A stretch of DNA of 64,000 bases from Blastocystis sp. Blastoise (lineage: Eukaryota > Protista > Bigyra: Opalinata). The stretch is from contig JBBPEB010000033.1 of the NCBI GenBank assembly GCA_039096225.1, forward strand, positions 186,001-250,000, read 5' to 3'. The notes below the pieces were generated by a model. It searched no databases and was not told the origin of the DNA. It saw only the letters and a list, made by a program, of their open reading frames with translations. The number at the start of each line of letters is the position of its first letter. The stretch's first letter is position 1. Below, one piece after another: positions 46,923 to 49,505 of the stretch. The translations under genes were made by a program, and so were the position numbers.

Positions 46923-49505
46923 ATGGGTATAACTAAAAAAAGTATTTTTTTAGCAACTATATATATTGTAATGTTCATAGGTAAAATGGAAGATGTTTTC
47001 AATACTGAAGATATGAAACTCATTCCTAATGTTGTCACTTCTATGCAAAATATGTATAACAATAAAATTAAGCCAATTGAGCAACTTTACTTATATGATC
47101 GTTTTTATGCTCCTTTAATGGAAACTCGTGAGTTTAGTGCTAAACCTATGGTTCTTCTGATTGGTCAATATTCTGTTGGTAAAACATCTTTCATTCGTTA
47201 TTGTTTAGAACGTGATTTCCCTGGTCAGAGAATTGGTCCTGAACCTACTACTGATAAATTCACTGCTTTAATGTATGGTAATGACGAACGAGTTATTCCT
47301 GGTAATGCTGCTGCTGTGTCTCGTATATATTTATTGCTTTTAATCTATTTTATTTATATCTGGATATCTATGAATTTATAATTATTCTTTTTTATTAATT
47401 ATAATAGTATGCATTCATTATGTTTTTCTATATTTATAGAGGATTTTGCATTTACTACTCTTCAGGAATTTGGTAGTGGTTTCTTAAATAGATTTGAAGT
47501 CGTTGAAGTACCTGCTAACGTTTTAGAAAATGTCACTTTTGTCGATTCTCCTGGTATTTTATCTGGTGAAAAACAACGTATTAACAGAAGTTATAACTTT
47601 TCTGAAATTATTACTTGGTTTGCTAATAAATGTGATCGTATTTTATTATTATTTGATGCTCATAAACTTGATATTTCTGATGAAATGAAAGAAGCTATTG
47701 AAGCTTTAAGGGTATGTTTATTATTATGTTTATTATGTTTAATATTATGTTTATTATGTTTAATATTATGTTTATTATGTTTAATATTATGTTTAATATT
47801 ATGTTTATTATTATGTTTATTATGTTTTTATTATAATAGGGTAATGATGATAAGATTCGTGTTGTTTTAAATAAGGCTGATTCTGTCGATAAGCAACAAC
47901 TTATGAGAATTTATGCATTTATCAATAATATTATATATATTGATATTCTTATTTCTTTCTATTATATATATATATATATATATATAGTTATGGTGCTCTT
48001 ATGTGGTCTCTTGGCCGTGTTGTTTCTTCTCCTGAAGTCCTTCGTGTCTATATAGGTTCTTTCTGGGATCAACCTATTCGTTATGAATACTTCAAAGATC
48101 TATTTATTATGGAACAAACAGATCTATTCGCGGATCTTCGTGCTCTTCCCGCCAATTCTGTCGTCAGAAAGGTATATTAGTATTCATATTAATATTATTA
48201 TTATAATATAAAATTTTATTGGAATCATTCTTTTCTTATTATTTGTTATTATTATTATTATGATTTCAATATTTCAATAATGAATTTATATCTTTATATA
48301 TATATATATCTTTTTTTTTTAGATTAATGATTTAGTGCGTAGAACTCGTTTAACTAAATGTCACGCCCTTATATTATCCTACTTAAAGGGACAAATGCCT
48401 AAAGTCTTTGGTAAAGTATATTTTTATTTTTATTTTTATTTATTTATTATATTTATTATTATTATTATTATTATTATTATTATTATTATTATTATTATTA
48501 TTATTATTATTATTATTATTATTATTTTTATTTTTATTTATTTATTATTATTATTATTATTATTATTATTATTATTATTATTATTATTATTATTATTATT
48601 ATTATTATTATTATTATTATTATTATTATTATTATTATTATATATATAGCAAAAGAAGCAACAAGAATTAATTGATAATATGCCTGCTATCTTCCAACAA
48701 TTACAGGCTGAATATCGTCTTCCTGCTAGTGATTTCCCTGAAATAGAAGGATTTAAAAAGTTATTAGAAAATATGGATTTCACTACATTCCCTAAATATG
48801 AAAAGGATATGTTTGATCAATTAGATATTGTCTTATCTAAAGATATACCAGCGTATATTATATATATATATATGTTTATTTATTATTTTTTTTGATATAT
48901 ATATATATATATTTATATATAGTTTAATGAATATGTTACCTAAACCTGAAAAACAAGATGCTAATGCTGAACAAGCCAAAGAAGCTGGATATATATTATT
49001 ATCTTATTATTATTATATATATTATTATTCTATTATGATAACAATAATAACTATTATTATGATTTCTATAGGGTGAGAATCCTTTTGCTGCTCCTGAACT
49101 TGTTAGTAATGCAGGTAATTGGAGAATTACTCAAGCTCATAAAGCTGAATGTGATAATATATTCTCAGGATTAAAAACTATTAATGGAAAAGTATATATA
49201 TATATATATATATATTTATGATTCTCCAAATAGAATTAATAGAATTATCTTCTAACTTTGTATTTCTATTATAATAAGTATCTGGTGCTGCTTGTAAGGA
49301 TATTATGATGAAGAGTGATTTACCCACTGATGATCTTCGTAAAATATGGGAATTAGCTGATGTTGACCAAGATGGTAAATTTGATGCTGGTGAATTTGCT
49401 GTTGCTATGTATTTAATTAATGATAGAATGGCAGGTAATAAATTACCAGATACATTACCTGAAGATCTTGTTCCTCCTTCCAAGAGATCTAAACATGTTC
49501 TTTAA
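46923..49505 (+). CDS. EHD1: EH-domain-containing dynamin-like ATPase (EHD/RME-1), 9 introns of which 3 need non-canonical termini
   Basis: KPMVLLIGQYSVGKTSFI, RIGPEPTTD, DSPGILSGEKQR, FDAHKLDISDE, LMRIYGALMWSLG, RVYIGSFW, NPF, and the EH domain IWELADVDQDGKFDAGEFAVAMYL. Confidence 0.93.

Follow-up and report, generated by a model that had tools for sequence, protein, structure and literature searches.

A probable polishing artifact behind the TT start of an EHD gene intron in a Blastocystis genome assembly

In Oikopleura and Fritillaria, in euglenids (the non-conventional introns) and in dinoflagellates, a few percent or more of the introns lack GT-AG ends, and in some introns of these lineages the boundary is ambiguous, because each junction carries a short repeat. 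These lineages have recurrent end types of their own, or structures that pair the intron ends. U12-type introns can also have ends other than GT-AG. In variant calling from RNA-seq, the read ends that reach into introns are clipped by the pipelines, owing to the false variants that arise from such overhangs.

Here we analyze an intron with a TT start in the Blastocystis gene for an EHD protein (EH-domain dynamin-like ATPase), together with other odd introns of the same assembly. The intron resembles an ordinary U2-type GT-AG intron in being short and AT-rich, in its consensus bases at positions +2 to +6 and at the acceptor, and in its conserved phase-2 position; it differs in the T that the assembly gives at +1. 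Compared to the lineages mentioned above, the odd ends of Blastocystis keep the consensus but for one base, have canonical orthologues and show no end-pairing fold, and the odd base is predicted by the neighboring exon, not by a motif. The similarity to the false variants of overhanging reads is closer: the odd ends lie in the first or last two intron bases, they are the exon base from across the junction, and they are more frequent where more overhang lengths would align, although here the false base would be fixed in a published consensus. We consider it probable that the TT start of EHD intron 3 is a polishing artifact, which it has in common with the other odd introns of the assembly.

The window, i.e., the whole 64,000-nucleotide stretch of DNA that was analyzed (C22:186001-250000), contains the EHD gene at 46986-49505 on the plus strand, with nine exons and eight introns, the ATG at 46986 and the stop codon TAA at 49503-49505. 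Intron 3 (47911-47987, plus strand) is 77 nt long, has 10% GC and reads TTATGC...TATATAG. Exon 3 (47840-47910, plus strand; protein end ...QQLMR + AT, phase 2) finishes with CTT ATG AGA AT at 47910, and exon 4 (47988-48171, plus strand; YGALMWSLGR...RK) resumes with T TAT GGT GCT CTT ATG TGG at 47988. The odd base, a T at 47911 (C22:233911) where the G of the donor is expected, is identical to the first base of exon 4. It opens a direct repeat, TTATG, with one copy at the intron start (47911-47915, plus strand) and the other at the start of exon 4 (47988-47992, plus strand), in the codons (I)YG. Through this repeat the intron can be read in six equivalent registers, TT-AG, TA-GT, AT-TT, TG-TA, GC-AT and CA-TG, none of which is GT-AG, GC-AG or AT-AC; with TT at 47911-47912, no register combines AG with the GT or GC 5' end that a U2-type intron requires.

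There are three Gs in the whole intron (47915, 47942 and 47987) and no GT, an alternative in-frame GT donor does not exist, and the in-frame junction solver, applied within 30 nt of either exon end, found no GT-AG solution. The EHD motif LMRIYGALMWSLG stays in frame only if the intron is removed. Its length of 77 nt is not divisible by 3, so that retention shifts the frame, and read-through meets a stop about 20 codons into exon 4. The remaining splice signals are those of the genome at large. Positions +2 to +6 (TATGC) fit the donor consensus GTATRY, and the acceptor TATATAG (47981-47987) matches the local consensus T(-5) A(-4) T(-3) A G, both consensus sequences having been built from 175 introns; GTATGC donors are also present elsewhere in the same genome. 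An earlier note, made from the sequence of the window, had placed the 77-nt TT-AG intron at exactly these boundaries within the EHD motif, and re-reading of the sequence and the frame check agree with it. Its statements that no register gives GT-AG or GC-AG, that there is no nearby GT in the right phase and that retention frameshifts the ATPase are likewise borne out by the register table, the solver and the read-through stop.

Intron types with unusual ends of their own were considered and set aside. The U12-type donor [AG]TATCCTT and a TCCTTAAC-like branch site 10-20 nt from the 3' end are absent from 47911-47987. A non-conventional intron of the euglenid type was rejected, as intron 3 has no stable end-joining structure: its minimum free energy is -15.2 kcal/mol, compared to a mean of -14.5 for shuffled sequences (z = -0.25), and no structure pairs its ends. 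A search of the window against Rfam gave no match.

Besides intron 3, the EHD gene has two more odd introns, as the earlier note had described and as the sequence and the frame check bear out. Intron 7 (48987-49071, plus strand) is GG-AG; the unexpected G stands at +2, and exon 8 (GGT...) has the same base in second position. Intron 8 (49192-49277, plus strand) is GT-AA; here the unexpected base is an A at -1, which is also the final base of exon 8 (...AAA). The five introns other than 3, 7 and 8 read GTATRT...TAG. It should be noted that intron 2 (47712-47839) is filled by a minisatellite of the ATTATGTTTA type, with a unit of about 10-25 nt, and that more than 100 similar arrays were found on many contigs by a DNA search of the genome; intron 5 (48416-48649) consists of 234 nt of near-pure (ATT)n with 1% GC.

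A word search with exon 4 led to a 93%-identical fragment on gut-metagenome contigs. In the relative with 44% GC (L009), all eight EHD introns of the window are found at the same positions and phases, and all of them are GT-AG. Intron 3 of this relative (2452-2490) reads AGAAT|GTATGT...GTTAG|TTATGG in phase 2, and that of a more distant Blastocystis with 56% GC (L018; 8219-8248) reads AGAAT|GTGCGG...AGTAG|CTATGG, also in phase 2. The counterparts of introns 7 and 8 in the 44% GC relative are GTATGT...TGTAG and, in the same phase, GTATGG...GTGTAG. The earlier proposal that TTATGC is the donor GTATGC with a changed +1 base agrees well with these orthologous donors (GTATGT and GTGCGG) and with the GTATGC donors found elsewhere in the genome. 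Judged by its orthologues, EHD intron 3 is a real, ancient and normally canonical intron. In the 44% GC relative, the gene is interrupted by three additional short introns with GT-AG ends (at about 1724-1771, 2913-2941 and 3443-3474), which lie inside the window's exon 1, exon 6 and the exon of the EH domain. The sequence collections were searched for contigs of this strain derived from transcripts or Illumina reads, and none was found; the exon-4 ORF is without a record there.

If EHD were a recently inactivated pseudogene, its splice sites could be decaying, and a damaged splice dinucleotide in 3 of its 8 introns is what such a gene might show. We give this explanation almost no credence. 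When the nine exons are joined in a script, they form 523 codons with no stop and no frameshift. The complete set of four domains expected of an EHD protein (EHD_N, the Dynamin_N G domain, the helical DUF5600 and the C-terminal EH domain) scores above the Pfam cut-offs; all EHD searches were run exon by exon, and the joined exons were used for the frame check alone. The gene is present in a single copy in the genome. Protein identity to the 44% GC relative is 81-94% in the ATPase exons 1-5 (92.6% for exon 3 and 93.7% for exon 4) and 63-77% in the C-terminal exons, despite a gap of 20 GC points between the DNA compositions. Moreover, the chance that the first three hits of a decaying 2.5-kb gene would all fall in its 32 splice bases is about 1e-6, and odd ends of the same kind occur in RPS5 and CCT genes. 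As its sequence conservation indicates, the EHD gene is under purifying selection and is not a pseudogene, which removes one of the two conditions under which the earlier note would have given up its case; decay does not account for the three "broken" splice sites, given that the exons remain intact and conserved.

The survey of other introns comprised the window and about 135 kb of loci obtained by family searches. The window and nine CCT/HSP60 loci yielded 140 confident GT-AG introns and one further validated odd intron, a CT-AG intron of a CCT gene (C34:195547 to 195426) with an odd C at +1, whose first seven bases, CTAAGTT, are identical to the start of the next exon. A repeat of the same length is found in the window's DEAD-box helicase gene, where an intron at 37098-37323 on the minus strand ends in ATACTAA, the last 7 nt of the upstream exon. 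The earlier note had read this intron as GT-AC. The protein register fixed by the orthologue on contig L017 (K|F.. versus K|Y.., in the same phase) replaces that reading by GT-AA, with an odd A at -1, as the best one.

The ribosomal protein gene RPS5 is present in two near-identical copies (L056, C1:169053-172190; L057, C21:957083-960217), which have three non-AG acceptors in common. Two of these acceptors, GT-TG and GT-AA, copy the ends of the upstream exons (...ATG and ...CAA). The third, GT-AT, obeys the same rule only if a strong downstream donor, GTATTT, is used, and this donor would add two residues to a conserved protein. Between the two copies, the exons have one synonymous difference, and the introns have many indels and about 3% substitutions.

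A second sample of 89 kb, made up of proteasome loci and their neighbors, contained no validated exception; its unvalidated cases that fit the rule are one GC-AG, one CT-AG and two GT-AA introns. In the mixed sample, odd introns constitute about 2-3% of all introns. They are clustered: 3 of 8 introns in EHD, 3 of 5 in RPS5 and 1 of about 62 in the CCT/HSP60 genes, with none flagged in the proteasome genes, whose introns were uncounted. The de novo junction solver raises many false alarms. Alarms in the FHA gene (about 52.6 kb), in an S1-domain gene (about 31.3 kb) and in the DEAD-box helicase gene (36.6-36.8 kb) of the window, as well as in a PHD-like gene on C26 and a CCT gene on C8, all turned out to be canonical introns by homology; in each case the cause was a skipped micro-exon or a wrong frame.

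The odd ends follow one rule. At all five homology-validated odd ends (EHD +1 T, EHD +2 G, EHD -1 A, DEAD-box helicase -1 A and the +1 C of the CCT gene on C34), the odd base is the exon base found at the same offset across the junction, and the match from the junction through the odd base is perfect at each of them. In RPS5 the rule holds at 2 of the 3 acceptors, and at the third if the strong donor is used. To relate the rule to how closely an intron end resembles the exon on the other side of its junction, we used an overhang model with bwa-like scores (match +1, mismatch -4, clipping 5), in which the support of an end is the count of overhang lengths whose alignment would run on through the first mismatch to the cross-junction exon. 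Odd ends were scored after the canonical base had been restored, so that in these figures the canonical base is assumed. The share of changed ends was 1 of 165 with a support of one length, 1 of 106 with two to four lengths, 1 of 12 with five or more lengths, and 2 of 2 where all spliced reads would extend into the intron. The difference between the two high and the two low support classes (2 of 271 changed in the latter) is significant by Fisher's test (p = 9e-4), on small numbers. EHD intron 3 belongs to the class of five or more lengths, with overhangs of 1-6 bases of TTATGG aligning on GTATGC, and both cases of a 7-nt match were changed. Three ends with a high predicted support (about six overhang lengths) remained unchanged.

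The repeats themselves point in the same direction. For the 280 canonical ends, shuffled pairings lead to an expectation of 2.07 one-mismatch 7-nt near-repeats and 0.15 perfect ones; the observed numbers are 0 and 0. Two perfect 7-nt end repeats were observed, both at odd ends, outside the set of 280. It is as if the one-mismatch near-repeats had been converted into perfect ones. The copy rule and its dependence on similarity are characteristic of spliced reads that were misaligned while the consensus was polished. The claim of the earlier note that the T is a genuine base, spliced as such by the cell, is thus unsupported: every validated odd end is a copy of the exon beyond the junction, and such ends become more frequent as the prior similarity increases. 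The artifact would correspond to the other condition that the note set against its case, a G at 47911 in accurate reads.

Most likely, the assembly is the genome of Blastocystis sp. Rus-B, from a Russian tortoise. It has 33.3 Mb in 33-34 contigs and 23% GC, and the window has 22-26% GC in most 2-kb bins. The Rus-B assembly was made from R9 Nanopore reads with racon, POLCA being the last polishing round, and both the DNA and the RNA libraries were sequenced on MiSeq (Genome Res 2025, PMC12129017). POLCA aligns reads with bwa mem and replaces a base if the alternative count is above 1 and no less than double the reference count (PMC7347232). Under the polishing explanation, RNA-seq or cDNA reads from spliced transcripts would have been among the short reads given to the polisher. 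As bwa mem is not splice-aware, the end-to-end alignment of a read that ends just past a junction would run into the intron, since a single mismatch (-4) is cheaper than clipping (-5). The exon 4 start TTATG, when laid on the intron start GTATG, would then put a T at +1 in every read with an overhang of 1-6 nt, and the POLCA threshold would be easily reached inside an AT-rich intron where genomic coverage is low. The GG-AG and GT-AA introns of EHD and the odd introns elsewhere in the genome would arise in the same way. EHD intron 3 is then most likely an ordinary ancient U2-type intron, with GTATGC as its presumed true donor.

Several observations do not fit this scheme easily. The Rus-B paper describes Polypolish polishing with Illumina DNA and makes no mention of RNA reads given to POLCA (PMC12129017). 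The clustering of the odd ends counts against an artifact and requires an extra assumption, for example, local gaps in DNA coverage. The GT-AT acceptor of RPS5 and the three unchanged ends with high support are further weak points.

An ordinary residual error of the Nanopore reads or the consensus, in which a G was miscalled as T in AT-rich DNA and the match to exon 4 is a coincidence, appears very unlikely as the source of the T at 47911. Errors of this type are conceivable in an assembly of R9 Nanopore reads with racon, and the Illumina coverage may be low, as the reads come from a MiSeq run on a xenic culture. In addition, at two surveyed junctions (C8:1739459-1739321, L062/L084, and C4:852010-851867, L071), a strong GTATAT donor and a TATATAG acceptor are 1-2 nt out of frame, which a residual indel error of the assembly would explain. 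However, in EHD 3 of the 32 splice-dinucleotide bases are hit while 1569 exon bases are spared, repeats of 5-7 nt as seen at the odd ends are expected in well under 1% of ends, and random errors would not reproduce the cross-junction exon base in every validated case.

Conversely, the T may be real, in a lineage where a few percent of the introns are spliced although they lack G at +1 or -1. Two versions of this explanation can be envisaged: a tolerant spliceosome that relies on strong extended motifs (xTATGY...TATAG), or a mechanism that uses the short direct repeats at both junctions. In its favor, the assembly was polished with short reads and its exons are clean, the odd introns lie in essential and intact genes (EHD, CCT, RPS5 and DEAD-box helicase), and identical odd acceptors occur in both near-identical copies of RPS5. 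The remaining donor and acceptor positions are those of the consensus, and mRNA processing in Blastocystis is already unusual in that stop codons are made by polyadenylation. We nevertheless regard a genuine T as rather unlikely, and the broader claim that tortoise-clade Blastocystis splices introns without G at +1 or -1, perhaps aided by repeats, with the T and the other odd ends all being real, as unlikely. The 5' end of the U1 snRNA (L050) is canonical, ATACTTACCT, and pairs with a G at +1. The orthologous introns are canonical in two relatives, and intron 3 has no unusual end-joining fold. A tolerant spliceosome would leave unexplained why the odd base is the cross-junction exon base and why the frequency shows an aligner-like threshold of similarity. 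To our knowledge, no spliceosome tolerates a +1 base of U, A or C, or a -1 base other than G, this often. A biological reading needs tolerance of any base at +1 and -1, as well as a reason for the copy rule, and we know of neither. The authors of the genome, who used RNA-seq junctions, report nothing of this kind (PMC12129017). It should be noted that the genome has two U1 snRNA genes with equal scores (L050, C8:1926241-1926394; L051, C26:320852-321005).

If the odd ends are the product of polishing, then the odd splice sites in the published genome have no biological meaning and ought not to be described as permissive splicing. Gene models built on the GT-AG requirement are broken by them, and the low BUSCO scores found for the tortoise strains may be due in part to such sites; the copy rule would be a simple screen for any assembly polished with short reads. 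If, on the other hand, the bases are real, there is a striking exception to GT-AG in a gut protist for which RNA-seq and DNA reads are public, and the most conserved rule of nuclear splicing is relaxed despite an otherwise canonical U1.

We made several additional observations at neighboring loci. A contig of a GC-richer relative (L017) is syntenic with positions 36950-53000 of the window and carries enolase, the FHA gene, a membrane protein, a Big_5 protein and the DEAD-box helicase; around the EHD-enolase block, the order is inverted or rearranged. The enolase gene of the window (50625-51968; 447 aa) is intronless amid an intron-dense genome. Its orthologue in the GC-richer relative (L009/L017) is 89% identical and is also a single uninterrupted ORF; thus, the intronless structure is not limited to the assembly analyzed here. 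In the sequence collections, the window's own enolase was found on a single contig only, and a search with enolase for the sister tortoise strains (Rus-S and Hermann's) returned only the GC-richer gut-metagenome relative. A giant VPS13-like gene (about 10200-27900, minus strand) contains at 11734-11826 an AT-rich, intron-like segment without GT that is open in frame (IYILIIIII...); from its sequence, it may be a low-complexity insert or else an intron with odd ends, AT-AG or TT-AG. The FHA-domain gene (52484-52727, minus strand) has a 53-nt micro-exon (TLYLHRCSAFLFGRDDR) that is kept in the relative, and skipping it leads to a false non-canonical call.
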